Positions 3,509 to 44,420 are shown, numbered from the stretch's first letter. The stretch is DNA of 64,000 nt from Oikopleura dioica (GCA_907165135.1 OU015567.1:5704001-5768000), one strand, 5' to 3'. A program made the numbers and translations. The notes: generated by a model from the sequence alone, not told the origin.

Positions 3509-4148
3509 CCTAACCCTAACCAAACCCTAACCCTAACCTAACCTAACCTAACCCTAACCCTAACCTAACCCTAACCCTAACCCTAACCTAACCCTAACCC
3601 TAACCCTAACCCTAACCCTAACCTAACCCTAACCTAACCCTAACCTAACCCTAACTAACCCTAACCCTAACCTAACCCTAACCCTAACCCTACCTAACCC
3701 TAACCTAACCTAACCTAACCCTAACCCTAACCCTAACCCTAACCCTAACCCTAACCCTAACCCTAACCTAACCCTAACCCTAACCCTAACCCTAACCTAA
3801 CCCTAACCTAACCTAACCTAACCCTAACCCTAACCTAACCCTAACCCTAACCCTAACCCTAACCCTAACCCTAACCCTAACCTAACCCTAACCCTAACCC
3901 TAACCTAACCTAACCTAACCCTAACCCTAACCCTAACCCTAACCCTAACCCTAACCTAACCCTAACCCTAACCCTAACCTAACCCTAACCCTAACCCTAA
4001 CCCTAACCTAACCCTAACCCTAACCCTAACCCTAACCTAACCTAACCCTAACCTAACCCTAACCCTAACCCTAACCCTAACCCTAACCCTAACCCTAACC
4101 CTAACCCTAACCCTAACCCTAACCCTAACCCTAACCCTAACCCTAACC

Positions 4149-4189
<41 letters not shown>

Positions 4190-4747
4190 CCCTAACCCTA
4201 ACCCTAACCCTAACCCTAACCCTAACCCTAACCCTAACCCTAACCCTAACCCTAACCCTAACCCTAACCCTAACCCTAACCCTAACCCTAACCCTAACCC
4301 TAACCCTAACCCTAACCCTAACCCTAACCCTAACCCTAACCCTAACCCTAACCCTAACCCTAACCCTAACCCTAACCCTAACCCTAACCCTAACCCTAAC
4401 CCTAACCCTAACCCTAACCCTAACCCTAACCCTAACCCTAACCCTAACCCTAACCCTAACCCTAACCCTAACCCTAACCCTAACCCTAACCCTAACCCTA
4501 ACCCTAACCCTAACCCTAACCCTAACCCTAACCCTAACCCTAACCCCTAACCCTAACCCAACCCTAACCCTAACCCTAACCCTAACCCTAACCCTAACCC
4601 TAACCCTAACCCTAACCCTAACCCTAACCCTAACCCTAACCCTAACCCTAACCCTAACCCTAACCCTAACCCTAACCCTAACCCTAACCCTAACCCTAAC
4701 CCTAACCCTAACCCTAACCCTAACCCTAACCCTAACCCTAACCCTAA
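3509..4747 (-). repeat. Telomeric repeat (CCCTAA)n, start of right contig
   Basis: ~1.24 kb of CCCTAA; CCTAA variants in the distal ~550 bp, near-perfect array proximally. Confidence 0.98.
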
Positions 4748-10700: not shown

Positions 10701-13700
10701 CAGGGAGAACACTCTCACCTTAACAAGAACCCTTATTAAACCTAGCGACAACACAGGGAGAACACTCTCACCTTAACAAGAACCCTTATTAAACCTAGCG
10801 ACAACACAGGGAGAACACTCTCACCTTAACAAGAACCCTTATTAAACCTAGCGACAACACAGGGAGAACACTCTCACCTTAACAAGAACCCTTATTAAAC
10901 CTAGCGACAACACAGGAGAACACTCTCACCTTAACAAGAACCCTTATTAAACCTAGCGACAACACAGGGAGAACACTCTCACCTTAACAAGAACCCTTAT
11001 TAAACCTAGCGACAACACAGGGAGAACACTCTCACCTTAACAAGAACCCTTATTAAACCTAGCGACAACACAGGAGAACACTCTCACCTTAACAAGAACC
11101 CTTATTAAACCTAGCGACAACACAGGGAGAACACTCTCACCTTAACAAGAACCCTTATTAAACCTAGCGACAACACAGGGAGAACACTCTCACCTTAACA
11201 AGAACCCTTATTAAACCTAGCGACAACACAGGGAGAACACTCTCACCTTAACAAGAACCCTTATTAAACCTAGCGACAACACAGGGAGAACACTCTCACC
11301 TTAACAAGAACCCTTATTAAACCTAGCGACAACACAGGGAGAACACTCTCACCTTAACAAGAACCCTTATTAAACCTAGCGACAACACAGGGAGAACACT
11401 CTCACCTTAACAAGAACCCTTATTAAACCTAGCGACAACACAGGGAGAACACTCTCACCTTAACAAGAACCCTTATTAAACCTAGCGACAACACAGGGAG
11501 AACACTCTCACCTTAACAAGAACCCTTATTAAACCTAGCGACAACACAGGGAGAACACTCTCACCTTAACAAGAACCCTTATTAAACCTAGCGACAACAC
11601 AGGAGAACACTCTCACCTTAACAAGAACCCTTATTAAACCTAGCGACAACACAGGGAGAACACTCTCACCTTAACAAGAACCCTTATTAAACCTAGCGAC
11701 AACACAGGGAGAACACTCTCACCTTAACAAGAACCCTTATTAAACCTAGCGACAACACAGGGAGAACACTCTCACCTTAACAAGAACCCTTATTAAACCT
11801 AGCGACAACACAGGGAGAACACTCTCACCTTAACAAGAACCCTTATTAAACCTAGCGACAACACAGGGAGAACACTCTCACCTTAACAAGAACCCTTATT
11901 AAACCTAGCGACAACACAGGGAGAACACTCTCACCTTAACAAGAACCCTTATTAAACCTAGCGACAACACAGGGAGAACACTCTCACCTTAACAAGAACC
12001 CTTATTAAACCTAGCGACAACACAGGAGAACACTCTCACCTTAACAAGAACCCTTATTAAACCTAGCGACAACACAGGGAGAACACTCTCACCTTAACAA
12101 GAACCCTTATTAAACCTAGCGACAACACAGGGAGAACACTCTCACCTTAACAAGAACCCTTATTAAACCTAGCGACAACACAGGAGAACACTCTCACCTT
12201 AACAAGAACCCTTATTAAACCTAGCGACAACACAGGAGAACACTCTCACCTTAACAAGAACCCTTATTAAACCTAGCGACAACACAGGAGAACACTCTCA
12301 CCTTAACAAGAACCCTTATTAAACCTAGCGACAACACAGGGAGAACACTCTCACCTTAACAAGAACCCTTATTAAACCTAGCGACAACACAGGGAGAACA
12401 CTCTCACCTTAACAAGAACCCTTATTAAACCTAGCGACAACACAGGGAGAACACTCTCACCTTAACAAGAACCCTTATTAAACCTAGCGACAACACAGGG
12501 AGAACACTCTCACCTTAACAAGAACCCTTATTAAACCTAGCGACAACACAGGGAGAACACTCTCACCTTAACAAGAACCCTTATTAAACCTAGCGACAAC
12601 ACAGGAGAACACTCTCACCTTAACAAGAACCCTTATTAAACCTAGCGACAACACAGGGAGAACACTCTCACCTTAACAAGAACCCTTATTAAACCTAGCG
12701 ACAACACAGGGAGAACACTCTCACCTTAACAAGAACCCTTATTAAACCTAGCGACAACACAGGAGAACACTCTCACCTTAACAAGAACCCTTATTAAACC
12801 TAGCGACAACACAGGGAGAACACTCTCACCTTAACAAGAACCCTTATTAAACCTAGCGACAACACAGGGAGAACACTCTCACCTTAACAAGAACCCTTAT
12901 TAAACCTAGCGACAACACAGGGAGAACACTCTCACCTTAACAAGAACCCTTATTAAACCTAGCGACAACACAGGAGAACACTCTCACCTTAACAAGAACC
13001 CTTATTAAACCTAGCGACAACACAGGGAGAACACTCTCACCTTAACAAGAACCCTTATTAAACCTAGCGACAACACAGGAGAACACTCTCACCTTAACAA
13101 GAACCCTTATTAAACCTAGCGACAACACAGGGAGAACACTCTCACCTTAACAAGAACCCTTATTAAACCTAGCGACAACACAGGGAGAACACTCTCACCT
13201 TAACAAGAACCCTTATTAAACCTAGCGACAACACAGGGAGAACACTCTCACCTTAACAAGAACCCTTATTAAACCTAGCGACAACACAGGGAGAACACTC
13301 TCACCTTAACAAGAACCCTTATTAAACCTAGCGACAACACAGGAGAACACTCTCACCTTAACAAGAACCCTTATTAAACCTAGCGACAACACAGGGAGAA
13401 CACTCTCACCTTAACAAGAACCCTTATTAAACCTAGCGACAACACAGGAGAACACTCTCACCTTAACAAGAACCCTTATTAAACCTAGCGACAACACAGG
13501 GAGAACACTCTCACCTTAACAAGAACCCTTATTAAACCTAGCGACAACACAGGGAGAACACTCTCACCTTAACAAGAACCCTTATTAAACCTAGCGACAA
13601 CACAGGGAGAACACTCTCACCTTAACAAGAACCCTTATTAAACCTAGCGACAACACAGGGAGAACACTCTCACCTTAACAAGAACCCTTATTAAACCTAG

Positions 13701-16700
13701 CGACAACACAGGGAGAACACTCTCACCTTAACAAGAACCCTTATTAAACCTAGCGACAACACAGGGAGAACACTCTCACCTTAACAAGAACCCTTATTAA
13801 ACCTAGCGACAACACAGGGAGAACACTCTCACCTTAACAAGAACCCTTATTAAACCTAGCGACAACACAGGAGAACACTCTCACCTTAACAAGAACCCTT
13901 ATTAAACCTAGCGACAACACAGGGAGAACACTCTCACCTTAACAAGAACCCTTATTAAACCTAGCGACAACACAGGGAGAACACTCTCACCTTAACAAGA
14001 ACCCTTATTAAACCTAGCGACAACACAGGGAGAACACTCTCACCTTAACAAGAACCCTTATTAAACCTAGCGACAACACAGGGAGAACACTCTCACCTTA
14101 ACAAGAACCCTTATTAAACCTAGCGACAACACAGGGAGAACACTCTCACCTTAACAAGAACCCTTATTAAACCTAGCGACAACACAGGGAGAACACTCTC
14201 ACCTTAACAAGAACCCTTATTAAACCTAGCGACAACACAGGGAGAACACTCTCACCTTAACAAGAACCCTTATTAAACCTAGCGACAACACAGGGAGAAC
14301 ACTCTCACCTTAACAAGAACCCTTATTAAACCTAGCGACAACACAGGGAGAACACTCTCACCTTAACAAGAACCCTTATTAAACCTAGCGACAACACAGG
14401 AGAACACTCTCACCTTAACAAGAACCCTTATTAAACCTAGCGACAACACAGGAGAACACTCTCACCTTAACAAGAACCCTTATTAAACCTAGCGACAACA
14501 CAGGGAGAACACTCTCACCTTAACAAGAACCCTTATTAAACCTAGCGACAACACAGGAGAACACTCTCACCTTAACAAGAACCCTTATTAAACCTAGCGA
14601 CAACACAGGAGAACACTCTCACCTTAACAAGAACCCTTATTAAACCTAGCGACAACACAGGGAGAACACTCTCACCTTAACAAGAACCCTTATTAAACCT
14701 AGCGACAACACAGGGAGAACACTCTCACCTTAACAAGAACCCTTATTAAACCTAGCGACAACACAGGGAGAACACTCTCACCTTAACAAGAACCCTTATT
14801 AAACCTAGCGACAACACAGGGAGAACACTCTCACCTTAACAAGAACCCTTATTAAACCTAGCGACAACACAGGAGAACACTCTCACCTTAACAAGAACCC
14901 TTATTAAACCTAGCGACAACACAGGGAGAACACTCTCACCTTAACAAGAACCCTTATTAAACCTAGCGACAACACAGGGAGAACACTCTCACCTTAACAA
15001 GAACCCTTATTAAACCTAGCGACAACACAGGGAGAACACTCTCACCTTAACAAGAACCCTTATTAAACCTAGCGACAACACAGGGAGAACACTCTCACCT
15101 TAACAAGAACCCTTATTAAACCTAGCGACAACACAGGGAGAACACTCTCACCTTAACAAGAACCCTTATTAAACCTAGCGACAACACAGGGAGAACACTC
15201 TCACCTTAACAAGAACCCTTATTAAACCTAGCGACAACACAGGAGAACACTCTCACCTTAACAAGAACCCTTATTAAACCTAGCGACAACACAGGGAGAA
15301 CACTCTCACCTTAACAAGAACCCTTATTAAACCTAGCGACAACACAGGGAGAACACTCTCACCTTAACAAGAACCCTTATTAAACCTAGCGACAACACAG
15401 GGAGAACACTCTCACCTTAACAAGAACCCTTATTAAACCTAGCGACAACACAGGAGAACACTCTCACCTTAACAAGAACCCTTATTAAACCTAGCGACAA
15501 CACAGGGAGAACACTCTCACCTTAACAAGAACCCTTATTAAACCTAGCGACAACACAGGAGAACACTCTCACCTTAACAAGAACCCTTATTAAACCTAGC
15601 GACAACACAGGGAGAACACTCTCACCTTAACAAGAACCCTTATTAAACCTAGCGACAACACAGGGAGAACACTCTCACCTTAACAAGAACCCTTATTAAA
15701 CCTAGCGACAACACAGGGAGAACACTCTCACCTTAACAAGAACCCTTATTAAACCTAGCGACAACACAGGGAGAACACTCTCACCTTAACAAGAACCCTT
15801 ATTAAACCTAGCGACAACACAGGGAGAACACTCTCACCTTAACAAGAACCCTTATTAAACCTAGCGACAACACAGGGAGAACACTCTCACCTTAACAAGA
15901 ACCCTTATTAAACCTAGCGACAACACAGGGAGAACACTCTCACCTTAACAAGAACCCTTATTAAACCTAGCGACAACACAGGAGAACACTCTCACCTTAA
16001 CAAGAACCCTTATTAAACCTAGCGACAACACAGGGAGAACACTCTCACCTTAACAAGAACCCTTATTAAACCTAGCGACAACACAGGGAGAACACTCTCA
16101 CCTTAACAAGAACCCTTATTAAACCTAGCGACAACACAGGGAGAACACTCTCACCTTAACAAGAACCCTTATTAAACCTAGCGACAACACAGGGAGAACA
16201 CTCTCACCTTAACAAGAACCCTTATTAAACCTAGCGACAACACAGGGAGAACACTCTCACCTTAACAAGAACCCTTATTAAACCTAGCGACAACACAGGG
16301 AGAACACTCTCACCTTAACAAGAACCCTTATTAAACCTAGCGACAACACAGGGAGAACACTCTCACCTTAACAAGAACCCTTATTAAACCTAGCGACAAC
16401 ACAGGAGAACACTCTCACCTTAACAAGAACCCTTATTAAACCTAGCGACAACACAGGGAGAACACTCTCACCTTAACAAGAACCCTTATTAAACCTAGCG
16501 ACAACACAGGGAGAACACTCTCACCTTAACAAGAACCCTTATTAAACCTAGCGACAACACAGGGAGAACACTCTCACCTTAACAAGAACCCTTATTAAAC
16601 CTAGCGACAACACAGGGAGAACACTCTCACCTTAACAAGAACCCTTATTAAACCTAGCGACAACACAGGAGAACACTCTCACCTTAACAAGAACCCTTAT

Positions 16701-19700
16701 TAAACCTAGCGACAACACAGGGAGAACACTCTCACCTTAACAAGAACCCTTATTAAACCTAGCGACAACACAGGGAGAACACTCTCACCTTAACAAGAAC
16801 CCTTATTAAACCTAGCGACAACACAGGGAGAACACTCTCACCTTAACAAGAACCCTTATTAAACCTAGCGACAACACAGGGAGAACACTCTCACCTTAAC
16901 AAGAACCCTTATTAAACCTAGCGACAACACAGGGAGAACACTCTCACCTTAACAAGAACCCTTATTAAACCTAGCGACAACACAGGGAGAACACTCTCAC
17001 CTTAACAAGAACCCTTATTAAACCTAGCGACAACACAGGGAGAACACTCTCACCTTAACAAGAACCCTTATTAAACCTAGCGACAACACAGGGAGAACAC
17101 TCTCACCTTAACAAGAACCCTTATTAAACCTAGCGACAACACAGGAGAACACTCTCACCTTAACAAGAACCCTTATTAAACCTAGCGACAACACAGGAGA
17201 ACACTCTCACCTTAACAAGAACCCTTATTAAACCTAGCGACAACACAGGGAGAACACTCTCACCTTAACAAGAACCCTTATTAAACCTAGCGACAACACA
17301 GGGAGAACACTCTCACCTTAACAAGAACCCTTATTAAACCTAGCGACAACACAGGGAGAACACTCTCACCTTAACAAGAACCCTTATTAAACCTAGCGAC
17401 AACACAGGGAGAACACTCTCACCTTAACAAGAACCCTTATTAAACCTAGCGACAACACAGGAGAACACTCTCACCTTAACAAGAACCCTTATTAAACCTA
17501 GCGACAACACAGGGAGAACACTCTCACCTTAACAAGAACCCTTATTAAACCTAGCGACAACACAGGAGAACACTCTCACCTTAACAAGAACCCTTATTAA
17601 ACCTAGCGACAACACAGGGAGAACACTCTCACCTTAACAAGAACCCTTATTAAACCTAGCGACAACACAGGGAGAACACTCTCACCTTAACAAGAACCCT
17701 TATTAAACCTAGCGACAACACAGGGAGAACACTCTCACCTTAACAAGAACCCTTATTAAACCTAGCGACAACACAGGAGAACACTCTCACCTTAACAAGA
17801 ACCCTTATTAAACCTAGCGACAACACAGGAGAACACTCTCACCTTAACAAGAACCCTTATTAAACCTAGCGACAACACAGGGAGAACACTCTCACCTTAA
17901 CAAGAACCCTTATTAAACCTAGCGACAACACAGGGAGAACACTCTCACCTTAACAAGAACCCTTATTAAACCTAGCGACAACACAGGGAGAACACTCTCA
18001 CCTTAACAAGAACCCTTATTAAACCTAGCGACAACACAGGGAGAACACTCTCACCTTAACAAGAACCCTTATTAAACCTAGCGACAACACAGGAGAACAC
18101 TCTCACCTTAACAAGAACCCTTATTAAACCTAGCGACAACACAGGAGAACACTCTCACCTTAACAAGAACCCTTATTAAACCTAGCGACAACACAGGGAG
18201 AACACTCTCACCTTAACAAGAACCCTTATTAAACCTAGCGACAACACAGGAGAACACTCTCACCTTAACAAGAACCCTTATTAAACCTAGCGACAACACA
18301 GGAGAACACTCTCACCTTAACAAGAACCCTTATTAAACCTAGCGACAACACAGGGAGAACACTCTCACCTTAACAAGAACCCTTATTAAACCTAGCGACA
18401 ACACAGGGAGAACACTCTCACCTTAACAAGAACCCTTATTAAACCTAGCGACAACACAGGGAGAACACTCTCACCTTAACAAGAACCCTTATTAAACCTA
18501 GCGACAACACAGGAGAACACTCTCACCTTAACAAGAACCCTTATTAAACCTAGCGACAACACAGGAGAACACTCTCACCTTAACAAGAACCCTTATTAAA
18601 CCTAGCGACAACACAGGAGAACACTCTCACCTTAACAAGAACCCTTATTAAACCTAGCGACAACACAGGAGAACACTCTCACCTTAACAAGAACCCTTAT
18701 TAAACCTAGCGACAACACAGGGAGAACACTCTCACCTTAACAAGAACCCTTATTAAACCTAGCGACAACACAGGGAGAACACTCTCACCTTAACAAGAAC
18801 CCTTATTAAACCTAGCGACAACACAGGAGAACACTCTCACCTTAACAAGAACCCTTATTAAACCTAGCGACAACACAGGGAGAACACTCTCACCTTAACA
18901 AGAACCCTTATTAAACCTAGCGACAACACAGGGAGAACACTCTCACCTTAACAAGAACCCTTATTAAACCTAGCGACAACACAGGAGAACACTCTCACCT
19001 TAACAAGAACCCTTATTAAACCTAGCGACAACACAGGGAGAACACTCTCACCTTAACAAGAACCCTTATTAAACCTAGCGACAACACAGGGAGAACACTC
19101 TCACCTTAACAAGAACCCTTATTAAACCTAGCGACAACACAGGGAGAACACTCTCACCTTAACAAGAACCCTTATTAAACCTAGCGACAACACAGGAGAA
19201 CACTCTCACCTTAACAAGAACCCTTATTAAACCTAGCGACAACACAGGAGAACACTCTCACCTTAACAAGAACCCTTATTAAACCTAGCGACAACACAGG
19301 GAGAACACTCTCACCTTAACAAGAACCCTTATTAAACCTAGCGACAACACAGGGAGAACACTCTCACCTTAACAAGAACCCTTATTAAACCTAGCGACAA
19401 CACAGGGAGAACACTCTCACCTTAACAAGAACCCTTATTAAACCTAGCGACAACACAGGGAGAACACTCTCACCTTAACAAGAACCCTTATTAAACCTAG
19501 CGACAACACAGGGAGAACACTCTCACCTTAACAAGAACCCTTATTAAACCTAGCGACAACACAGGGAGAACACTCTCACCTTAACAAGAACCCTTATTAA
19601 ACCTAGCGACAACACAGGGAGAACACTCTCACCTTAACAAGAACCCTTATTAAACCTAGCGACAACACAGGAGAACACTCTCACCTTAACAAGAACCCTT

Positions 19701-20022
19701 ATTAAACCTAGCGACAACACAGGGAGAACACTCTCACCTTAACAAGAACCCTTATTAAACCTAGCGACAACACAGGGAGAACACTCTCACCTTAACAAGA
19801 ACCCTTATTAAACCTAGCGACAACACAGGAGAACACTCTCACCTTAACAAGAACCCTTATTAAACCTAGCGACAACACAGGGAGAACACTCTCACCTTAA
19901 CAAGAACCCTTATTAAACCTAGCGACAACACAGGGAGAACACTCTCACCTTAACAAGAACCCTTATTAAACCTAGCGACAACACAGGGAGAACACTCTCA
20001 CCTTAACATATTAAACCTAGCG
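4747..20022. repeat. Subtelomeric tandem satellite, 53-bp unit (52-bp GG variant), ~290 copies
   Basis: Unit ACACTCTCACCTTAACAAGAACCCTTATTAAACCTAGCGACAACACAGG(G)AGA repeated head-to-tail; last unit has an 8-bp deletion. Confidence 0.99.
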
Positions 20023-30930: not shown

Positions 30931-31140
30931 CTCCCCCGATTTCAACTGCTAGACCGGGCTTTTCTTTGGAAATAATCAACAAGCGCTACAAAACATGCTT
31001 CTGTATCTGACTTCCTTGCCTAAACATTGATCCTGAAGTTCCTTTTCAATGCAATCAAGAAAGACAAACGAATCCTCAGAAGGCTCATACACAGAATTGG
31101 TATAATCATACCATGCTGAATAATCTGGCGTTGGAGGCAT
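30930..31140 (-). pseudogene. N6AMT1: N6AMT1/HEMK2 methyltransferase 5' fragment fused to ANKZF1
   Basis: MPPTPDY...SVYEPSEDSFVFLDCIE...AVEIGGG; similarity ends in the SAM-binding motif. Confidence 0.75.
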
Positions 31141-31232
31141 TCTTAATTTTACGATGTCAGTTTTATTGAAATTTATAATTTGGCAGTATTTTAATTAAAA
31201 TTTATTTTTTTATAATTTATTATTTATTTTTA

Positions 31233-32586
31233 TTAAAGCGGTGCGTCTTCTGATGCTGCATGAGCGACCATCTGTCGTGGAAGACCTCTTCGCAGTAGCG
31301 ACATTGCATGGGAATCTAAACGAAACGGCGATAAACAACAACAACGTGAACCGGTGTTACCTCTTGATAAGAATGTTGGTTGCGCATGTGAACATCCAAG
31401 TTGGACTTTCGGCCAAACATCGTGTGGCAAATTTCGCCTTAAAACGCGGAATTGAAATCAACAACGAAAATCTGTTGCTTACATTCGAACTTTGGCGCGG
31501 TCTTCGTGTGCTGCTGCATGACGTGCCTTTTGAGCTTGCTGTTCTGCGTAAATCGCGCCTTGCAGTGCGGACACTCGTAGGGCTTTTCGCCCGTGTGCGA
31601 GAACTCGTGCCGCTTGAGATTGGAGCTGGATCCAAACGCTTTGCCGCAGATGTCGCAGCTGAACGGCTGCTCGCCCGTGTGAGTTCTGAAAAACTTTTAT
31701 CCAGAGTTGGACTTCCCGAATAGAAAATAAATTTTCTATTTTGAACTGACCTCATATGGCGACAAAAATTTGATTTATCGGCGGAAGCGTATTCGCACAA
31801 AGTGCATTTGAACGGTTTTTCGTCGGTGTGTTTGGACCGCCTGTGTTTCGTCAATCCACCAGATGTTACAAAGGCCATCTCGCAGTTCGCCTCTGGGCAC
31901 TAAGAAATTATTCAATGAGCGCTAGAAGTTGAAGTGTGTTTACCTTGTAAGGCTTGAAGCTGGAAGCTGGTTGGACTGACACTTCACTGGCTGACTCGTC
32001 AGACTAAGGTAAAGTTAGAGTTCTTTTTCATGATTTCAAATCGTTACCTCCTCTCGTTGATTGGAAGCAATAGATTCTGGCCTCGGAACATCTGAAGAAG
32101 AGCCAGAGAACGCAGGCTCAGGCTGTTCGGAGGTACCAGCGGTGACATTTGAAGATCGGTCAAATGTCTCGTAGTCAGGATTTGTCGTATCAGCAGCGTT
32201 TCTCTCGGAAGGAAGATTGGTCACGTTAGCAGTGTTGTCGAATGTGCCATACTCTGGATTCGTATCAACAGGAGTCTCTACTCTGCTCTCGTTGCCATCT
32301 GTGGTAATGATTTAAAAGAATTAATAGATTATCACTATGAATTATAGTCTATGATGGTCTCATGAAAGATACCATATTTGTGAATTTACAGATTTAAATC
32401 ATTTCCTGAATCAATGTTTTGTACTCGGTCATCAGACTCTGCATCTGATATGTCTGAAACTCCTGATGTGTCAACGTCTTCTTCCTCCGAATACTGGTCT
32501 GATACATCGCGAATAACAGTGAATTTGAAGTCTTCTGTTTCCAATTCGGCAATGACTATTAGCAGTGTAGACAGGTTGATTTTGCT
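31233..32586 (-). CDS. 3' part of PDZ + CTCF-like gene: PDZ end, acidic linker, six C2H2 fingers matching CTCF ZF3-ZF8
   Basis: Spliced reading [27 protein letters not shown]...CKARFTQ...[23 protein letters not shown]...[21 protein letters not shown]; open frames, plausible short introns. Confidence 0.8.
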
Positions 32587-32591
32587 CATGA

Positions 32592-33793
32592 TGATACGGA
32601 AGCGGCTGTCCTGCAAGAATTTTGCTCGATCTCTAACTCTAGAATGCCAAGCCAAAATAACGAGAATCAAATTTTAAATTTGCGTGGTTTTATTTGTGAT
32701 TTGAATGACGGAAAAAGGCGCGACGCGGGGTTAAATAGCAGCGAGATTCGATCAGTGTTTTTGAGCAAGCGGTTGTTTTTGAAAAACAATTTTTCTATCG
32801 AAAACAAGGAAGAGAGCCCGCGGCTTCTTTTAGCGGTTTTTCTTGCGGGAAATCCTTTCGGATCGATTTCTTTTCGGAAGAGGAGCTGGTCGAACTTGCC
32901 AAGCAAGTTATTTTCAAAGGTTTCGGGAGCCGGCGCCGCGCGTGACGAGATAAAACGCAAATTAATTATTATTTTTTTTTTTATAATAAAAGCAGAAAAT
33001 AATAACAGCCACTTAAACTTCTCACTATGTGACCGTAGAAGTGACTGTTAATTATGATTGAAATAAATAAAGGATGAGAAAAGTAAAAGAATATATACAA
33101 AATTTTAACAAATAAATTGAATAAAATTTGGTCAGGATTTTATAAAATAAATTTATCAAAATTGAAATCATAGAAGAAGCAAATTCCAAGGAACATACCC
33201 GGGGGAAGTTACTGTCGCGGTTCGCACCGTATCTTCTCTTACGGATGAGCTAGTTTGCGACAAGCGGACGCACTGACAGAGAGTTTGTCCGACCCCACGG
33301 CACCGAGATGATACGACGGTTTATCTGCTCGTTGGAGTTGTTGTTGTTGAAGAAGGTGTTGACGGCTATTCTGTTGTAGACTTTGAATCGTATGTACTGT
33401 CAATAATCGAACTTTAAAATCGCAAAGCAATGATAAGAAATATCAATAAATAGATTAAACATGCGGTTTTGCGAATTGCATATTTTTGATGAATTGACGT
33501 CAGATCGCATTATGATGAGAGCATATGAGCATTCCAATGATAGAACGTATAGATCGTAAGGAGATGACATGATGATAAGACAATTTTGGGTCAATCTGGC
33601 TCGTTAAAACTGACCATCTTTTCATTTTAAGTAGAATATCGTGAAATGATTTTTGCAAATATGTCTGATCAATTTGGTGATACCAAGCTGACAAGACAAA
33701 TTTAAACTAGCGTAGAACCGAATTGGCGTAAATATTTGGCCGTGAAATAAAAATTTTTTATTTGGCTTGAGGCGTTGTTCCCTAAGGATATCA
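32592..33793 (-). repeat. 3' LTR (1202 bp)
   Basis: Direct repeat of 39407-40603; the only difference I could see is a T-run length (11 vs 6). Confidence 0.96.
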
Positions 33794-33842
33794 CTGTGAC
33801 CTTCCATGGGTCCCAAACGAGCATCTTTATCGCCCATCTTTT

Positions 33843-36800
33843 TCATATTTCAGTTTCAAAGTCCGGAAGAAAAACAAGAACATTTTTACGCATTGGATGA
33901 TTTGGAAATTTTTTAAGCAGTTCTGTTTCGATAGATGCCTGTAAAATTGTTTTTGAGCAGTTTCGAAATTTACAGGGTAAATCATAAAATGCGCATACAG
34001 TTTTTAGCTCGGGGACAGTTAGTTCGTACAACGTTCGCTCTTTTTGCACTCTAAAGACCGCAAAAAAAAGGAGTTGTCCGTTTCTCGATTTGCGCCAATT
34101 CGGATATTCTCTACGAATAGTTTCCTTCACTTTTATCTGAAGTTTTGCCCTTGATTCCTCAAGATCAAATTCCTGATTCATTTTAAAAAGAATGAATAAA
34201 AGAGAGTCTCTTGTTAATTCGTTCAGTTTGATAAATATACCATTTCCAACATAGGTCTCCTCTATGTCGTCTGTATTTTTCCATTTATCATTAAGATATT
34301 CGAAAAACTCAAGATCATGATTTTCCATTTTAATTAAAATTGACATGTTTTCCAAATTATTTTCAACTGTAAATTTAGCAATTTTACGCTCGACAACGGA
34401 ATCATCAGATCTTTCCCTTCTACGTTTTATAGCAACTAGCGGATCAATTTCGGGCAATTTATCGTACGATGTCAAATTAACAGAGAGCTCAGAATCAGAA
34501 CTTGATTTCTCGGAATCAAGCACAATGTCTGATCCATTTCCTACTTGATTCAAATCACGTTCTTGATTACCATTTATATTCGGTACTGGCATTTCTATCA
34601 AAAGAGTCGATGAGGATGAAAAATTTTCTGGTTCTGAAGAAGAACTAGACCGCTCCCGATAAGGTTCCGATTGTAAAGACTGATCTGACCTTCCGGAGGA
34701 GAAAGGTTCATGCGCTTTTTCCGATTCTTTTTCTGTGGGGGAATTTTCAGCAAACCGGCCGAGGGAATCCTTCGAAAAAAGACAGTTTTCGGAAAAAAAT
34801 TCAAAAAACTCGAGATCGTTCTCTTGTGGCTTTGTCACAATCTTGGAGTATTTTTCAACATCATTATTCGTCTCTAAAATTGAATTTCGCTGAGAATAAC
34901 TTTTCATATGTTCCGCATGTCGCCTAAATTCGTCCTTATCATTTTTAACAGCGTACCACAGACCACTCGGGGATTTAAACGTCACTTCATAAGGACCTAA
35001 AAACGGAGGAAATTTTTCGCGGAAATTTTTAATAAGAACTTTATCGCCTAAATTGTATTCTTTGAAACGGGGATTTTCAAATTTGGTCATTCTTTTTTGC
35101 TTTTCTTGTTCAATTTTCGCACGAATTTTCCCAAAGTCTACGTCGATTTTATCTCCGTATGTTCGCCAATAAGGGTCTTGAAAATGATGACTGCTTTTTA
35201 TACCAGTTTCTACACAAAATGGGGTTGTTCCGAGTACTGTGTGTAAACTACTGTTTATTTCGTGAACAATTTCAAACAGAAAAATATCCCAATTCACCCA
35301 ATTTGAACGAGCCCTGAGCCTGGCTTTTATGGTTCTATTGACGTTTTCAACTTGCCCGTTAGACTGGGGATGACGCGGGGGAATATAATGTACACCAATT
35401 TTATTTTCTTTCAAAAATTTTTCAATCAGAACGTGTTCCTTCGCGTTATCTAAAACCATATATTTTGGAAATTTTGGATTTCTAAATAATACGCTCCGGA
35501 ATTTTTGCAGTAAATAATCCGATTTTTTGCACGATAGGGGCTCCGCGTAAACTTTTTTGCTAAAACCGTCAATAACCACCATTATATATTTATGACCAAA
35601 ATCAGTTTCTTGAAGTGGGCCAATTAAATCAAAGTACAAAATTTCAAAAGGGCCGCTTGGTGTTTCAGATTTGCCTAAAGGAGGTTTGTTAGGCTGTAGA
35701 TTTGGTTTTGAAATTTGACATTTGTGACATGATTTTATAAAGCTCGCGACTGTATTTTTTAATCCCGGCCAAAAATACTTTCTAGAAATTTTTTCGGTTG
35801 TAATATCGACTCCGAAATGAGAGTGATCATGATATTCGCTGCAAATTGTCTCTGTCAATGCCTCGGGGACGCAAAATCTTTTTTGATAGGCTGGAGAATT
35901 TATAGCTAGCTCACCAGACCCAAGGATTTCAAGGTCAGGTCTACGTAAAAAGAATGGGTAAAGCTCGCTTGGTGGGTTATTTGGCCATCTATCAATACTA
36001 ACGAAACGTCTAACTTGTGATAATACTGGGTCAGATTTTTGAAACTCTACGAATGATTCAGGGGTAAATTTTATTTGATTGATCGAACAATTTAATGTAT
36101 TACGACTAAGGCAATCACTTATTTTCATTTGATGAGTTTTCCTCTGTTCAATTCGAAATGAAAAGCCCTGAAGCTCCGTAAACCATCTTTGAATTTTTAA
36201 ATTATTCGTCTTGAAGGATTGAGCGTATTTAACACAAGAGTTATCAGTAATCCAAAGAAAATCGACATAAGCAAGATAAGCCCTCCATCGTTCCATACAT
36301 GTCTTCCCACTATAAAGTTCTTTTTCCAATGTCCCGTATTTCTGTTGTGCCGGCGTAAAATTAAGCGAGTGGTAAGCTATCGGTTGTAGGCAATTATGAG
36401 AATGATGGTGATTTTTATTTCGCTCCGCGCAAAGATAAAGAACTCCACCAAAACTATGATTAGATGCGTCTGTCTCGAGTACGAAAACACCGTCATTTAG
36501 TGGGGGGATTTTGAGCTCAAGAGCGTTATGGCAGATGATACTTTTGAGCTTTTCGAGTGAAATCGTCGCCTCTTTTGTCCAACAAAATGACCCTCTGTAC
36601 GTTTTTGAAATTTCTACTCCCAGGGGTGCAAAATTTTTAATAAATTTTCTGTGCTGCGAAAGAAGTCCGAAAAGTGATTGTGCCTCCTCACGGTTTCTCG
36701 GAATAGACAGATTTTTAACCGCTTCGATCTTGTCCTGTGATGGCCGTATTCTCCCTTCAAAAATTTCAAAACCCAAAATGCATGCTTTTCGCTCAAAAAA

Positions 36801-38310
36801 ACTCGCTTTGTCGATGTTAATCCGTAAATTATTTTGGTCTAAAATTTGAAATAATTTACGTAAATTGGCTAAATGTTCTTCTTCCGTTCTTGAATGGACC
36901 ACTAAATCGTCAAGATAAGCGCAAATTTGAGTTTTCGGCGTGTCTCGTAAAATAACATCCATGCATTTTGCGAAATGAATAGGGGCATTTTTGAGACCCA
37001 TTGGAAGCCTTTTCCAAGTAAATTGTCCGTCTTCAGTCGAAAAAGCTAGTTTTTCTCGCGATTTCTCATCTACGAGGCACTGATGAAATCCTTTTCGCAA
37101 ATCAACACAAGAAAAAATAATGCTATTTTCTAAATACCCTAAAACGTCTTCAATTTGTTGCAACGGATGATGCTGCTGGAGCGTAAACGAATTTAATTTC
37201 CTGTAATCAATACATAATCTGAATGTACCATTCTTTTTCCTTACGAGTAACGCGGGGCTATTATAGGGTGAATTAATTCGCATTATCATGTCTTGCCCAA
37301 GGTAGGAGGTAGTAGTACCGGTCATTATTCCCCGCAAGGCATATGGCGTTCTGTACATATTGCTACAAATCGGGCGATCAGTCTCTAGTTCAATCGAAAA
37401 TTTTTCAAGGTTCGAAACAGGCAAATTGTCGTCCTCGTCTTGAAATAAATGGGTGTATATAGCAAGAAGACCAAAAAGTACCGGCTTATTCTTTTTCGAT
37501 ATATTCCCTATTTTTAACCGCGAAAGAAGAAAATTAAGATCTTTTTTTGAGGGCTTGATTTGGGCGATCTCAGCTATTTCCGCTAGTTTCGCAAAGGCCG
37601 TGCCAGCAGGAATTTTAACTGTAGAATTCAGGGGATTTATAACAAGAATACGAAAGAATGGATTCTCGGGATCAACTCTCTGGAATGATTCTATTAACTC
37701 TAGCTTCGAATTTTTAAGCTGGCTTTCTTCTAAAAAAAAGATTCATTGATCTGTTCAAATGAGGAATTTTCAAATCGATAATTTGCTCACTTTTGCCTCG
37801 AAATGTGTAAGTTTGCTCAGAAACGGCATAAAAACTGTCTTGCTCAATGTTATTAACTGTTGGGCTTTTTGATGCATTATTACATAAATTCGCCATTCGC
37901 TCTATAGGACCAGATTTAACTAGACGATTTCGATGAAGATTGATCATAATTTCATTAGATTTAAGTGCTTCCGAACCGAGAATTGCCTGACAATTGTCAT
38001 TTACAATATAAAATCGCGATTTACCCCATTTTTCCGTTTTAACATGAAAATCACATTCGACAAAACCAAGAATTTCAATACTTCCTCCACCGTAATTTTT
38101 AGCAAAAATATCAGGGGCTTGAATTTTAACATTATCGGGAATAAATGATTTGGGCAAAAGGTTAAGTTGGGAGCCAGAATCGACGAGCATTTTTATTTTT
38201 TTTGAAAAAACTGTCATTTCTACAAAATATTGTAATCCAATGCGAAAAATTGAACAAGTCCTTGGAACTGGTGCCTGACCAGGGCTTTCAGTTCCATTTA
38301 CTCGTTTTTT
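33843..38310 (-). CDS. pol: Pol polyprotein (PR, RT, RNase H, integrase with long C-terminal extension); one apparent frameshift at ~37735
   Basis: LVDSGS protease, YLDD RT, ETDAS RNase H, HHCC and D-D-E integrase (FDLIG, LDNAK, NGQVE), GPY motif. Confidence 0.95.
38263..38310 (-). promoter_or_regulatory. gag-pol -1 ribosomal frameshift signal
   Basis: A AAA AAC heptamer in the gag frame, 7-nt spacer, TGGAACTG/CAGTTCCA 8-bp stem; the -1 frame is open into protease. Confidence 0.8.
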
Positions 38311-39407
38311 GAAGTTTCTTCTCCCTCGACCCGAGCAGCTCTGTAAATTCTATCGGGATTATCGGGGCAAGCTGTTTTCATGTGGCCTTTTTTCTGACAA
38401 AAATGACAGGTAATAAAGGGGCAATGCGATCTAAAATGAGTGTCTGTGTTACAAAATCCACAAAATCGTCGAGGCCTTGGCCGATCCGGGTTTGGCGCGC
38501 CCAAATTTCGACTTTGAAAATTCCGTTGCTGGTTATTTTGACGCGTCAAACTCTGATCGTTGCGGCGATCAACTTCTAATTTTGCAATTGTTGCCGTTAG
38601 TTTTTCAATTTGATCATGAAGCGCACTCGCCCGCTTTTCCGCCGCCTCTTCTGATTTTTTCTGTTCAATTTTCAATTGAGAAATTTGATCCTCAAAGGAC
38701 ATTGTCGATTTTGAAATTAAGTCGGAAGTCGACTGGAAAAACGAGCCAAGTTTCGCGTCAATTTCGATTTGGGCAATTTTGGGGATAGTCTCATTTCGTT
38801 TTCTTTTGTCAAGAAATTTGGATATTTCCTCGGGTGTTTTTTCAAGCATACACTGATCGCGAAGAAAATTCTGCAGTTCAGGCGTGAGCGATTTTCTAAA
38901 TTGCGCGTCGATAATGTATTCTCTCGCGTCCGGTTTCTGCGTAATTTTCTCCGCGACAGTTTTAACACGTGACAAAAATATCTCGAATTTTTCATTGTTC
39001 TCGCTCTTTCGGGTGAGATTTTCCATTTTTTCTTTGTTTCGAAGGATCTTTTCCTCGGGCGATTCGTCGCCAAAAACAGACGTCAAAAAAGACAATTTTT
39101 CCTCAGCTGATTCAAATCCATAAAGATCTTCCCCGTATTCCCTAAGAAATTCCGGCTCGCATGAATTATAAACAAAAGAGCTTGAAAGGCGCGAAAATTG
39201 AGCCTCGAGGTCCTCTTTGTTTTCGGGTTTATTTTCCGCCAGAGATTTTTCAAAAATCCATTTTGCACGCTGTAATTTGTCTTTAATTGTAGAATTAATC
39301 AAATTGAATTCGAAATTTCTCATTCCTAATCTAATCATCTGATTTGGGGAAACCGAAAAAAGCGCATGACTCTTGTACAGTACCTCTTCAGGAGTTGGGG
39401 TCACCAT
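38298..39407 (-). CDS. gag: Gag with two CCHC zinc knuckles
   Basis: CGFCNTDTHFRSHC and CHFCQKKGHMKTAC; 369-aa ORF from the ATG at the LTR edge. Confidence 0.93.
   Translation of the reverse strand: MVTPTPEEVLYKSHALFSVSPNQMIRLGMRNFEFNLINSTIKDKLQRAKWIFEKSLAENKPENKEDLEAQFSRLSSSFVYNSCEPEFLREYGEDLYGFESAEEKLSFLTSVFGDESPEEKILRNKEKMENLTRKSENNEKFEIFLSRVKTVAEKITQKPDAREYIIDAQFRKSLTPELQNFLRDQCMLEKTPEEISKFLDKRKRNETIPKIAQIEIDAKLGSFFQSTSDLISKSTMSFEDQISQLKIEQKKSEEAAEKRASALHDQIEKLTATIAKLEVDRRNDQSLTRQNNQQRNFQSRNLGAPNPDRPRPRRFCGFCNTDTHFRSHCPFITCHFCQKKGHMKTACPDNPDRIYRAARVEGEETSKNE
39397..39406 (-). promoter_or_regulatory. Primer-binding site, probably tRNA-Trp
   Basis: TGGTGACCCC directly after the 5' LTR; matches the recalled 3' end of eukaryotic tRNA-Trp. 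Confidence 0.75.
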
Positions 39408-40603
39408 GATACGGAAGCGGCTGTCCTGCAAGAATTTTGCTCGATCTCTAACTCTAGAATGCCAAGCCAAAATAACGAGAATCAAATTTTAAATTTGCGT
39501 GGTTTTATTTGTGATTTGAATGACGGAAAAAGGCGCGACGCGGGGTTAAATAGCAGCGAGATTCGATCAGTGTTTTTGAGCAAGCGGTTGTTTTTGAAAA
39601 ACAATTTTTCTATCGAAAACAAGGAAGAGAGCCCGCGGCTTCTTTTAGCGGTTTTTCTTGCGGGAAATCCTTTCGGATCGATTTCTTTTCGGAAGAGGAG
39701 CTGGTCGAACTTGCCAAGCAAGTTATTTTCAAAGGTTTCGGGAGCCGGCGCCGCGCGTGACGAGATAAAACGCAAATTAATTATTATTTTTTATAATAAA
39801 AGCAGAAAATAATAACAGCCACTTAAACTTCTCACTATGTGACCGTAGAAGTGACTGTTAATTATGATTGAAATAAATAAAGGATGAGAAAAGTAAAAGA
39901 ATATATACAAAATTTTAACAAATAAATTGAATAAAATTTGGTCAGGATTTTATAAAATAAATTTATCAAAATTGAAATCATAGAAGAAGCAAATTCCAAG
40001 GAACATACCCGGGGGAAGTTACTGTCGCGGTTCGCACCGTATCTTCTCTTACGGATGAGCTAGTTTGCGACAAGCGGACGCACTGACAGAGAGTTTGTCC
40101 GACCCCACGGCACCGAGATGATACGACGGTTTATCTGCTCGTTGGAGTTGTTGTTGTTGAAGAAGGTGTTGACGGCTATTCTGTTGTAGACTTTGAATCG
40201 TATGTACTGTCAATAATCGAACTTTAAAATCGCAAAGCAATGATAAGAAATATCAATAAATAGATTAAACATGCGGTTTTGCGAATTGCATATTTTTGAT
40301 GAATTGACGTCAGATCGCATTATGATGAGAGCATATGAGCATTCCAATGATAGAACGTATAGATCGTAAGGAGATGACATGATGATAAGACAATTTTGGG
40401 TCAATCTGGCTCGTTAAAACTGACCATCTTTTCATTTTAAGTAGAATATCGTGAAATGATTTTTGCAAATATGTCTGATCAATTTGGTGATACCAAGCTG
40501 ACAAGACAAATTTAAACTAGCGTAGAACCGAATTGGCGTAAATATTTGGCCGTGAAATAAAAATTTTTTATTTGGCTTGAGGCGTTGTTCCCTAAGGATA
40601 TCA
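39407..40603 (-). repeat. 5' LTR (1197 bp)
   Basis: Direct repeat of 32592-33793. Confidence 0.96.
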
Positions 40604-43579
40604 CATGATGGAGCATCTCACACCGTTGAAGCAAATGAGAATATCTCCAGCACGAAGACCAGCTTTATCTGCTAACGACCCCGGGACAACCTCGCTGATG
40701 TGGATTCCTGCTTCGCTATTTTCGCTGAGCCTGAATCCAATTCTACCCTTAATGTTCTTCACATCTTTGATGAAGATTGTTTTCTCGTCATATTCTTCTC
40801 GCGTATCCCTTGTCTCCACGGACGAAGTGATGCTTCTCGGAGGCTTTCGAGCTGCAGAAGGAATAATTTTTGGATGTTTTTTCTTCATCGAAATCGGCTT
40901 CTTTTTTGATTTAGATGGCGATGGTGACTTCTCTGGTGATCGTAATTTGGTGAGCTTCGACATGCTAGCTGTTGGCGATCTATTTCTTCTCCGAGGAGGA
41001 CTTTGCGGTCGACGAACTTCCTCATCCTCGCTCGAGTTCAAGAAGCTCATGCTAGCTGTTGGCGATCTATTTCTTCTCCGAGGACGACTTTGCGGTCGAC
41101 GAACTTCCTCATCCTCGCTCGAGTTCAAGAAGCTAGAAAGATCAGCATCTGGTGGCATCGCTGGAGGTGTTAGATTCTTGCTGCACGTTGGTTCGTCATG
41201 CCTCAATTTCGCACTCTTTTCTTTCATTGCTTTCTTTTCACTTTGCTTCATCTTTCCGACGCCTCTTATTGGACTGTCATTATCAAATGCAGAAGACAAG
41301 TCCGAAATCTCGCTCAGGGCATCTCTTCCTGGACGACGAGGAATGGTGTTATCCACAGCTGGCTTAAGAATCGTCGGCTTTGACGCGCTTTTCTTAGGCG
41401 TTATATTTTCCTTCTCGTGCTTGCTCCTTTTCGCTGCGTGATCTTTCGTGCTTGCTTCGCCCTGCGCGTCCTTTTCAGGAGTCTGAAGCTTTCTCTTGTT
41501 TGAGGTGGGAAACATAAATTCGCGAACGTCCTCTCTGTCAATTGGCGCGGGTGGGAATTGATCATGTTCAGGCGATAGTGCTTGACGATCCTCCGCAGAT
41601 TCATCGAACAAAGCTTGCTGCGACCAGTTATTAGCTGACTCCTGCTCTTCTCGTGGCTGCGAGCGTTCATGACTTTGCGATTTTGAAGCTTTAGATTTCG
41701 AAGGTCCCGGATTTTCTTTTGCAGGCTTTTCCGCTACTGGAAGAAGCTTTTTGAAACGGCTTGATGATCCTGGAACGGGCTTCGAAAAATCCACCTTCGG
41801 TACTTTTGGCTCCCAAGAAGTCGCATTTTCAAGTTCTCGATGCAAGGGATCGCTCGAATCTCGTGCTCGGTATGTTCTTGAACTAAAAGCCCTCGCGAAT
41901 TCCAGACGTCTACTAATACCGCTAGCTTGTAATTTTCGAAGGGCTCTAGCCAAAGATTTATTCAACTCGTCGCGCGTTGGTTTTGCTCTCGATCTCGGCA
42001 TTTTTCTGTTAACTCTTTTTGAGAAAAATTCGCATTCGGTACTTTTGGCTCCCAAGAAGTCGCATTTTCGAGTTCTCGATTCAAGGGATCGCTCGAATCT
42101 CGTGCTCGGTTTCTTCTTGAAATAAAAGCCCTCGCCAATTCCAGACGTCCACTAATACCGCCAGCTTGTAATTTTCGACAGGCTTTAGCCACCGATTCTT
42201 TGACCTCATCACGCGTTGGTTTTGCTCTCGATCTCGGCATTTTTCTGTTAACTCTTTTTTGCTGTTTAGCCTGATCTATTTCAGCATTCCTCGTCGGCGA
42301 TTTGAGCTTCGCAAAGTAATCGTCATCTAAATCCTCGTCGAAAGTCTTCTGCGTGGCTGAGGCTTGCTCCAAGGTTGGAGAAGTGGGAGGCGTAAAATAT
42401 TTTTCATTAGTCCCTTGTGACTCTTCTTGAGGTTGAAGTTGAATTGCTGATGTTGACTCTTGTCGATTTTGAGTTGCTTGGGTTGACTGTTGTGAGTCGA
42501 GAGCAAGCGCTGTGTGGTTTAAAAGATCGCCCACTCGCTGGGTCTGGTTTATCCCTTCTTGTGACTTCTTCTTTCTTTCTTCTTGAGACTCTTCGGCGCA
42601 TAAGTTCAGCGCATCGTGAGTTCTCCTTTTTCTCCCTTCAGTCTCTCGTAGCGTCTCTCCAGAAGTCTGTGACCAGAAATCTTTCATTTCGACCTTTTTC
42701 GATCTCCCTGTCGTATCTCCCGAGGACGCCATGAATATTTCCGGGGTATCCATCGATTCTTCCTGATTTTCATTGAAGAGGCGTCGACGAAGCTTTCTCG
42801 GGGGCTGTGGAGGTGAAGCGGGTGCTGATTGATCAGTATTACTGGGCGATTTCGGTCGACTCTTTTCAGGCGTTTTGTAGACGGAGGAGCCTTGAGAAGA
42901 GTTGGCTTCTTCTTCGTCTTGCTGGGAAATCTGCGCAGTGTCCATTGGCTGCAGCTCATCATCGAAAAGTTCTCCGCTGACGGAGAGGGAGATCTCTGGA
43001 TCCGAAGGCACCTCATTATCGAAAAGTTCTCCGCTGACTGAGAGGGAGATCTCTGGATCCGAAGGCACGTCATCATTGAGTAGTTCTTCTTGACTAGTTC
43101 TTTGAGAAAACTCAGCAGCTCGCTCCATCATCTCATATCGGCTCAGTTGAGAAGGTTGAGTTTCCTGAGTTTCCCGGCCATCGGTGCTCTTCTGAGATTG
43201 GAGAAGCTCCGCTAACGGTATTCGAGGGGGGAATCTCAGTTGATTCCTTTGGAGAACTTGTCTTTCGTTGGGGAATCGGCGCTATAATTCGAGTTTATTT
43301 TCAATATTTATTTGATCGCTTACTTGGCTCGGGATCAAGATTTGGGGCCACCTTTGAGTTGGATGATTTGTTAGAAGTCTTCTCCGGCGATTTGAAGTGG
43401 GGTGAAGGCTGCGAAAACTCAGCAGCTCGTTCCAGCGGGGGGATATCTACGCGGAATTGCATGAAAATACGTCAGCTGGCTTTAATTTTACCTATTTCTG
43501 AAGATTCACCCTGGTCAATGAGACGCTCTCCCGAATTATCATCCGACGAAGGGGATTCGTCACTCTCTTTTCGTTTCAT
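40604..43579 (-). CDS. 5' part of PDZ + CTCF-like gene: SQ/TQ-rich disordered region and most of a PDZ domain
   Basis: ORFs 41962-43131 and 40601-42055; GRIGFRL...IHISEVVPGSLADKAGLRAGDILICFNG PDZ motif continues in frame across the TSD; 1-nt shift at an A-run near 42016-42020. Confidence 0.75.
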
Positions 43580-43792: not shown

Positions 43793-44420
43793 TTAAAAAG
43801 AAGGACTCGTTGCTTGAAACTCCTTGAGGCTCTTTCCCATTTGCTCCGCGCGAAATATCACTTCCGCTTCTTCATCCAACGCCGGTTTTCGCCATTTTCG
43901 ATGATCTATGTCCGCCAGTCCGCCGAGAATCTCTCGCATAAAATAAGGAGGGAAGCGTTCGCTATTCTCGACGATGTGAGCGAATCCTCCGCCACCGCCA
44001 AATTCGACGGCAATATGACCTAAAATCAATTCACCTTTGTTTCTCATCATTTTCTCACCTTATTGATGGGGAACTTTTTTGAAGAGATCTTTGAGGCCTC
44101 CTCTTTTGATGATGTTCATTGATGCCGCCTTCATCAGCGCCATATCCGAAGCTAAAAAAATACCTTGAAGACATGGAAGACTATCATGAAACTAACCCAT
44201 TCCTCCATCGTCATTCTTTTCATCACGAAGAAGAGCAGAAAAAACAGACTCGCGTTTCTGGTTACTTGGACGGATTGGACCACGGGCATCGTATTATTGA
44301 ACGACGATTGTGTTTTCATCTGGTAATTCGTCGATTTCTTTTTGAATTTTCGCAGCGTTTTCTTTGTTGCCTTTGAGATCGGCACGCATCAGCATTCCAG
44401 TGAGTTTGTTTCTGATTTCT
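43793..44420 (-). pseudogene. CWF19L2: CWF19L2 fragments with large internal deletion
   Basis: RNKLTGMLMRADLKGN and HIAVEFGGGGGFAHIVENSERFPPYFMREILGGLADIDHRKWRK; stops and frameshifts. Confidence 0.75.

Follow-up and report, generated by a model that had tools for sequence, protein, structure and literature searches.

The stretch of the Oikopleura dioica genome analysed here, 64,000 nucleotides (nt) of chr2 in the OKI2018_I69 assembly (C5:5704001-5768000, hereafter the window), carries on its minus strand a reading frame in which a PDZ domain is followed by an acidic linker and by zinc fingers (ZFs) derived from CTCF. The genome that was searched comprises 64.28 Mb in 19 contigs, and the loci are named by contig (C1, C2, C4 and C5). 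Three of them recur below together with the window: the animal's true CTCF gene (L011, C2:11824000-11833999), and two further chimeras, L012 (C4:5.12 Mb, annotated as chr1.g1380) and L013 (C5:5.669 Mb, annotated as chr2.g5486). All the features of the PDZ-finger gene lie on the minus strand, and its introns, 43-107 nt long, are in line with what is expected in this species, where the median intron is 49 nt (PMC8008620).

The fingers are encoded by a row of small exons. ZF3 and ZF4 share an exon at 31751-31899, with the recognition helices TSGGLTK and DKSNFCR, and ZF5 and ZF6, with the helices SSSNLKR and QNSKLKR, are encoded at 31483-31685 together with the first Cys region of ZF7. The remainder of ZF7, with the helix RKSNLDV, follows at 31361-31437, and ZF8, at 31238-31315, is identical at the protein level to ZF8 of the true CTCF. 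The last few codons, the stop and an A/T-rich 3' end could be read directly at 31199-31237. The introns between the finger exons are all of the GT-AG type, 43-65 nt long and consistent in phase. The best solved-structure matches of the ZF3+ZF4 exon are all CTCF (E = 3.8e-31), the alignment covering residues 325-370 of human CTCF, and the ZF5+ZF6 exon was aligned end to end with residues 372-440. The original prediction, made by a reader of the sequence alone, had claimed six fingers collinear with CTCF ZF3-ZF8, and the exon alignments to human CTCF bear this out. The hallmark strings MAFVTSG, ARFTQ and CRYC..VFH are retained; the acidic linker, the stop and the A/T-rich 3' end that it described are likewise present on the minus strand.

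The true CTCF of O. dioica, at C2:11.83 Mb, encodes ZF1-ZF8 with canonical helices, and a regular-expression scan of the 10 kb at this locus for C2H2 fingers beyond ZF1-ZF8 found none. The window and the true CTCF are 88% identical in DNA sequence, introns included, over 31957-31237 only. The homology takes in the final 14 nt of the ZF2 exon and stops right after ZF8; ZF1, ZF2 and the N-terminal region of CTCF are absent from the window gene, and the sequence upstream is homologous to a family of PDZ-Myb genes. Within the copied segment the finger exons are 91.4% identical to those of CTCF and the introns 71.6%. The placing of the fingers in the CTCF family is thus upheld by the 88% DNA identity and the structure matches, and the suggestion of a lineage-specific CTCF paralog, taken to mean a duplicate of the whole gene, is not supported, ZF1-2 and the CTCF N-terminus being missing.

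The main coding exon is found in two parts. The first (40604-42001) runs from an ATG homologous to the start of the annotated gene PAR.g10079, through the N-terminal half of the PDZ domain (strands beta1-beta5), to an insertion site; the ATG, at 42001, is the start used by g10079 and is intact in the window. Over 465 residues this part is 85% identical to PAR.g10079 in amino acids (aa). The N-terminal PDZ half, which ends ...FNGVRCSIM at 40604, scores 40.4 bits with Pfam PF00595 over profile positions 5-56 of 81 and thereby passes the curated cut-off of 23.2. It forms the end of a 484-aa open frame (40601-42055), which terminates in the PDZ match and runs on into a long terminal repeat (LTR) retrotransposon. 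The second part (32406-32586) encodes the C-terminal PDZ half (helix alpha2, strand beta6, ...FKFTVIR) and the acidic linker, and it ends at a GA donor in phase 1. With the element and one copy of its target-site duplication removed, ...FNGVRCSIM is followed in frame by SKINLSTLL...FKFTVIR. The restored frame of the original prediction holds in this respect. To its description of the domain as complete it must be added that PF00595 covers about two thirds of its model even in the uninterrupted paralogs (42.4 bits), in which a match to PF13180, PDZ_2, extends to position 70 of 80. The fold was modelled on a paralog segment. The AlphaFold model of this uninterrupted segment, of low confidence (mean predicted local distance difference test, pLDDT, 58), has three strands, a helix, two strands, a helix and a strand, the canonical PDZ order. 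A Foldseek search with the same low-confidence model gave no match at E <= 0.001; most of its weak top rows were PDZ domains.

Upstream of the main exon is an N-terminal low-complexity region (42002-43579), homologous to the N-termini of chr2.g5486 and chr1.g1380, with internal tandem repeats of 57 and 237 nt. An open reading frame (ORF) of 389 aa in this region (41962-43131) is not in the frame of the PDZ ORF. Three tandem duplications were observed within the gene, of 87, 237 and 57 nt (40961-41134, 41784-42259 and 42951-43064), and the 237-nt repeat pair brackets the homopolymer frameshift that is discussed below.

The retrotransposon is of the Ty3/gypsy type, 8.0 kb long (32592-40603), and lies in the orientation of the gene. 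It has two LTRs, at 32592-33793 (1202 nt) and 39407-40603 (1197 nt), that differ solely by an indel in a 5-T homopolymer, and it is flanked by a 5-bp target-site duplication, CATGA, at 32587-32591 and 40604-40608. Its gag (38298-39485), protease-region (37714-38217) and pol (33843-37424) frames are open, and the Pfam domains of pol follow one another as RVT_1 (residues 61-221), RT_RNaseH (314-421), Integrase_H2C2 (519-575) and rve (592-686). Paired LTRs, target-site duplication and the order reverse transcriptase-RNase H-integrase thus all identify it as an LTR retrotransposon. Seen against the PDZ model, the insertion would fall between strand beta5 and helix alpha2. It is very recent, and with LTRs that differ by the 5-T indel alone it is too young to bear on the past function of the gene; the assembled allele is either a gene that has only just been inactivated or one form of a site that is polymorphic for the insertion. 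At least 25 copies belong to the LTR family, most of them no farther than about 150 kb from a chromosome end, and a second element, at C5:14796838-14804854, has LTRs about 100% identical to the query LTR. A scan of the window for the CTCF core motif gave one match, 0.8 being expected by chance, and none in the LTRs.

The connection between the PDZ exon and the finger exons depends on an unusual intron. A GT donor fails at the PDZ-acidic junction, where the sole GT is in the wrong phase. A GA-AG intron of 107 nt in phase 1 (32299-32405) is instead the one used in the PAR.g10079 model, and its donor and acceptor are kept in four family copies, that of the window included; the annotated g10079 protein reads QNIDS/D/SNESRV, that is, a GA-AG phase-1 intron at the homologous position (window 32406/32298). 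O. dioica is unusually rich in GA-AG introns (PMC7072748), and non-canonical introns make up 11% in the OKI2018_I69 assembly (PMC8008620). The intron is followed by an acidic, Thr-Asn-rich exon ('acid2', 32048-32298), common to the PDZ-Myb paralogs and to the other CTCF-finger chimeras, and by a chimeric linker exon of 60 nt (31944-32003), whose 5' part derives from the Ser-rich exon of the PDZ-Myb family and whose final 14 nt are the end of the exon for CTCF ZF2 (..KPYK). The annotated chr2.g5486 has this linker exon and these finger exons joined at identical junctions, so that the g10079 and g5486 models together cover every junction of the proposed PDZ-finger model. The phase arithmetic also agrees over all six introns (466 + 60 codons, then phases 1, 0, 0, 2, 1 and 0). 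The exons were searched one by one, and the continuity of the gene rests on this arithmetic and on the two annotated paralog models; the splicing of the PDZ exon to the finger exons is predicted, as is transcription of the gene. About 7% of the sampled words from 31200-32590 were present in only three marine metatranscriptome runs, and these may derive from a paralog. The splice phases had been predicted to be compatible, which is the case for the GT-AG finger introns and at the PDZ-acidic junction demands the non-canonical GA donor. The exons, also said to be open, are so in the fingers; the PDZ exon is split by the retrotransposon, and the 389-aa N-terminal ORF is frameshifted.

The best protein match of the long exon is Oidioi.mRNA.OKI2018_I69.PAR.g10079, a protein of 623 aa with a PDZ and a Myb_DNA-binding domain (PF00249); most of the best solved-structure matches of this Myb domain are the TRF1/TRF2 teloboxes. 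The PDZ exon has five paralogs, at C1:7.93, C1:7.89 and C1:6.08 Mb, C2:1-2.4 kb and C4:14.50 Mb. In the copies at C1:7.93 and 7.89 Mb the match to the window begins at 32590, breaks off at about 31951-31963 and resumes over 31196-30936, so that the finger exons are skipped; in place of the fingers these copies have the remainder of the Ser-rich exon and a Myb exon. The window joins the PDZ-Myb family by its N-terminal ORF, PDZ, GA-AG intron, acidic exon, the start of the Ser-rich exon and the downstream flank. The C-terminal Myb/telobox-like domain of the family is not present, and the CTCF finger cassette stands in its place. The 5' joint of the CTCF piece is a 7-nt microhomology, TCAAGCC, at about 31951-31957, which occurs both in the Ser-rich exon and where the ZF2 exon of CTCF ends, and the frame runs through it intact. 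The homologies of the segments together with this joint imply that a DNA-level, microhomology-mediated event exchanged the Myb end for CTCF ZF3-8. The origin of the chimera is now clear, and at the DNA level the segment homologies and the 7-nt joint give good support to the earlier proposal of a young in-frame chimera produced by a mosaic process.

L012 and L013 have the same joint and finger exons as the window, and a Pro-rich segment at the position of its PDZ. In L012 the ZF3/4 exon has a 93-nt deletion and a 1-nt frameshift, and the g1380 model stops in the linker exon. L013, 34 kb before the window, is without exactly ZF5, and its frame breaks in the N-terminal part. These two chimeras and the five PDZ paralogs are the outcome of the search for other genomic copies that the original prediction had called for. 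PDZ matches and CTCF-like finger matches coincide in the genome at the window locus only, and the copy in the window is the only one that pairs a PDZ with six intact fingers.

Some further details of the copies were observed. At about 6600-6610 of L012 (C4:5122.6 kb) the ZF6/ZF7 intron has been lost via an intron-length deletion, shifted by 2 nt, which kept the frame and the Cys codon (TGT, not TGC). A short telomere-type (CCCTAA)n run lies within the intron after the ZF3/4 exon of L013, at about 7590-7640 (C5:5669.6 kb). The PDZ copies at C2:1-2372 and C4:14.496 Mb lie at scaffold ends or at most 40 kb from them, and both have a second copy of the N-terminal segment after the PDZ, in one long open frame.

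The fingers differ from those of the animal's own CTCF mainly where DNA would be contacted. Where the window has DKSNFCR, SSSNLKR and QNSKLKR, the true CTCF has EISKLRR, DSFHLKR and QHGSLKM, so the three helix strings given earlier were correct and are unlike those of the animal's own CTCF; of the 7 positions in each helix, 5 are different in ZF4, 3 in ZF5 and 4 in ZF6. Of the 27 residue differences in all, 16 are at helix positions -1 to +6. When only window-specific replacements are counted, 11 of 17 fall in the 42 helix positions among 168 codons (p = 6e-4). All 24 zinc ligands and all splice sites of the window fingers are intact. The ratio of non-synonymous to synonymous substitution rates (dN/dS) between the window fingers and the sister copy L012 is 3.06, from 2 synonymous (Sd) and 25 non-synonymous (Nd) differences, which no more than hints at positive selection on the fingers. 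The concentration of the replacements in the helices agrees with the earlier description of the array as re-specified. A change of the helices with the scaffold retained argues that the array was most likely used as a sequence-specific DNA binder whose specificity is not that of CTCF.

The surroundings of the gene contain pieces of other genes. A downstream flank at 30936-31196, minus strand, is common to all family copies, whether they have fingers or none (85-98% identity), and includes a truncated gene start; this stub (30936-31140) is tentatively named as the start of an N6AMT1/HemK-like methyltransferase gene, and its 54-aa piece had no match in Pfam. Just upstream of the PDZ-finger gene a CwfJ_C_2 fragment (PF04676, E = 2.7e-11) is found at 43793-44050, also on the minus strand. 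The same fragment opens the annotated gene PAR.g10080, which lies next to the PDZ-Myb gene g10079, and its presence at both places implies that the duplicated block includes pieces of neighbour genes. Elsewhere in the window, the composition stays uniform over 4001-20000 and the strands are strongly skewed (GC skew -0.41, AT skew +0.40), which fits the satellite array of an earlier note.

The best explanation we can offer is that the window gene is one copy of a young family restricted to the lineage of the Okinawa O. dioica. The ancestral gene, exemplified by PAR.g10079, would have had an N-terminus that was long and of low complexity, followed by one PDZ, a linker rich in acidic residues and Ser, and at the C-terminus a single TRF-like Myb domain. 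In the ancestor of the window copy a genomic CTCF segment of about 720 bp, which starts 14 nt short of the ZF2 exon's end and extends through ZF8, introns included, then took the place of the Myb-encoding end in a microhomology-mediated DNA event, the 7-nt joint being in frame, to give an ORF of PDZ, acidic linker, CTCF ZF3-8 and stop. Thereafter the base-contacting helix residues of ZF3-ZF7 were altered while zinc ligands, linkers and splice sites were retained. Such an array would tether to DNA any partner of the PDZ domain and of the N-terminus. The chimeric module was next copied to two loci, which lost the PDZ and decayed, and as the last step an active Ty3/gypsy-type element landed in the PDZ of the assembled haplotype. 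We estimate a probability of roughly 60% that the PDZ-finger gene has worked as a PDZ-tethered DNA binder of new specificity, or still does so on empty-site alleles. The anatomy, the source of every segment, the joint, the substitution pattern and the recent date of the insertion can be read in the DNA; binding of DNA with a new specificity, like any partner of the PDZ, is inferred.

Several observations weigh against this reading. The PDZ exon of the assembled allele is interrupted by the retrotransposon, so that this allele cannot make the fusion from an intact exon. Near 42017-42022 the window has A5 where four paralogs have A6, a 1-nt frameshift which may be a homopolymer error of the Nanopore-based assembly. 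No annotated protein from the locus was found in searches covering candidates of 266-847 and 315-1002 aa. A word search with ZF3+4 among candidates of 95-303 aa found none either, which is uninformative on longer proteins, and the top 150 of an exhaustive protein search with the ZF5+ZF6 exon were filled by giant poly-zinc-finger proteins because their many repeats add up. The PDZ part has a dN/dS of 0.6-0.8 against its paralogs. Among the chimeric copies dN/dS is 1.0-3.1, which does not exceed 1 significantly (Fisher p = 0.08), and 2 synonymous changes underlie the highest value, 3.06. Exons and introns have changed equally fast on the branch of the window copy (4.8% vs 3.9%), and part of the clustering in the helices could come from a small number of mutations that each altered several nucleotides. 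The two sister chimeras are both damaged.

These observations can be read as a non-functional mosaic, a rearranged and decaying copy, among many, of a segmentally duplicated block in which the frame is open only through the youth of the rearrangement and no PDZ-finger protein was ever used. The dN/dS of about 1-3 among the chimeric copies, the equal rates of exon and intron, the weak constraint on the PDZ, the broken state of L012 and L013, the upstream frameshift and the insertion, and the lack of an annotated model in the protein searches all speak for such a mosaic, as do the gene fragments at the two block ends, the CwfJ_C_2 piece and the putative N6AMT1-like stub. It does not, however, readily account for the clustering of window-specific replacements in DNA-contact helices with 24 zinc ligands and the splice sites intact, for exons far better conserved than introns relative to CTCF, for a joint that is in frame, or for the intron that L012 lost by a deletion preserving frame and Cys codon, and the insertion is too young to tell on earlier function; we consider the mosaic somewhat unlikely. 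A division into two genes, in which the PDZ protein ends at a TAA and the acidic and finger exons belong to a gene of their own farther downstream, read for example from an operon or driven by the 3' LTR, appears very unlikely. The open PDZ frame does reach a TAA at 32386-32388, 18 nt past the proposed GA donor, and the paralogs retain this stop; the O. dioica genome has dense genes and operons (PMC5240408); and the 3' LTR (32592-33793), being in the same orientation, could in principle promote read-out, with an in-frame ATG at hand within the target duplication (32587-32589). On the other hand, neither the acidic exon nor the linker exon has an ATG in frame, their frame is open in all the paralogs, and the annotated paralog g10079 joins its PDZ exon via the GA-AG intron on to a C-terminal DNA-binding domain. 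That the window gene is the animal's CTCF orthologue, or a whole-gene duplicate like vertebrate CTCFL/BORIS, could be imagined from the collinearity of ZF3-ZF8 and from the best structure matches being CTCF. This is refuted by the separate ZF1-8 locus at C2:11.83 Mb, the limitation of the homology to the stretch from the end of ZF2 to ZF8 and an N-terminus that belongs to another family, and can practically be dismissed.

The reading as a PDZ-tethered DNA binder can be extended, as a conjecture that is itself quite unlikely, to a family that is fast-evolving and partly subtelomeric. In this PDZ/TRF-like-Myb family, having captured CTCF ZF3-8, diversifying selection might be shaping chromatin tethers of a new, sequence-specific class against lineage-specific repeats or transposons, with the PDZ recruiting a partner. 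The family would then be a tunicate analogue of the KRAB zinc-finger proteins (KRAB-ZFPs), and the empty-site alleles would encode an active protein.

Whichever reading applies, the steps are legible base by base: a partial genomic copy, a microhomology joint in frame, the swap of the Myb, the change of the helices, copying, and decay. Should the protein be made, it would be a natural experiment on the limits to which CTCF fingers can be re-specified, and it would show the consequences of coupling such fingers to a peptide-binding PDZ rather than to the cohesin-binding N-terminus of CTCF. If it is not made, the locus is still a clean record of the birth and death of a chimeric gene in a compact, fast-evolving chordate genome. 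In the literature searched, CTCF-derived chimeras in Oikopleura are not mentioned.

The known kinds behind the chimera are CTCF paralogy and the making of new genes by exon shuffling. The finger array of CTCF is among the most conserved DNA-reading modules in bilaterians, and derivatives of it are rarely seen outside the CTCFL duplication of amniotes. With CTCF itself (O. dioica C2:11.83 Mb; human structures 7W1M and 5T0U) the window shares the order of ZF3-ZF8, the intron positions and the protein sequence of ZF8. Unlike CTCF, it is without ZF1-2 and the CTCF N- and C-terminus, the base contacts of ZF3-ZF7 are altered and the array sits on an unrelated PDZ protein. PAR.g10079 has the same N-terminal ORF, PDZ, GA-AG intron, acidic exon and linker start, and a single Myb/telobox-like end instead of the fingers. 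The sister chimeras, chr2.g5486 and chr1.g1380, agree with the window in the joint, the linker exon, the finger exons and the N-terminal family; they differ in being Pro-rich where the window has its PDZ, g5486 being without ZF5 and g1380 having a broken ZF3/4 exon. CTCFL/BORIS of amniotes arose by duplication of the whole gene, and it has all 11 fingers and a DNA specificity that is essentially that of CTCF. The window gene resembles it as a CTCF-derived paralog that retained fingers between different flanks, whereas only six fingers were copied here, grafted on another gene and apparently re-tuned. KRAB-ZFPs and PRDM9 are examples of rapidly re-specified C2H2 arrays. As in these proteins, the replacements in the window gene gather at helix positions -1 to +6 and leave the finger scaffold conserved. 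The gene is without KRAB or SET, and its fingers come from CTCF and not from a tandem-ZNF cluster.

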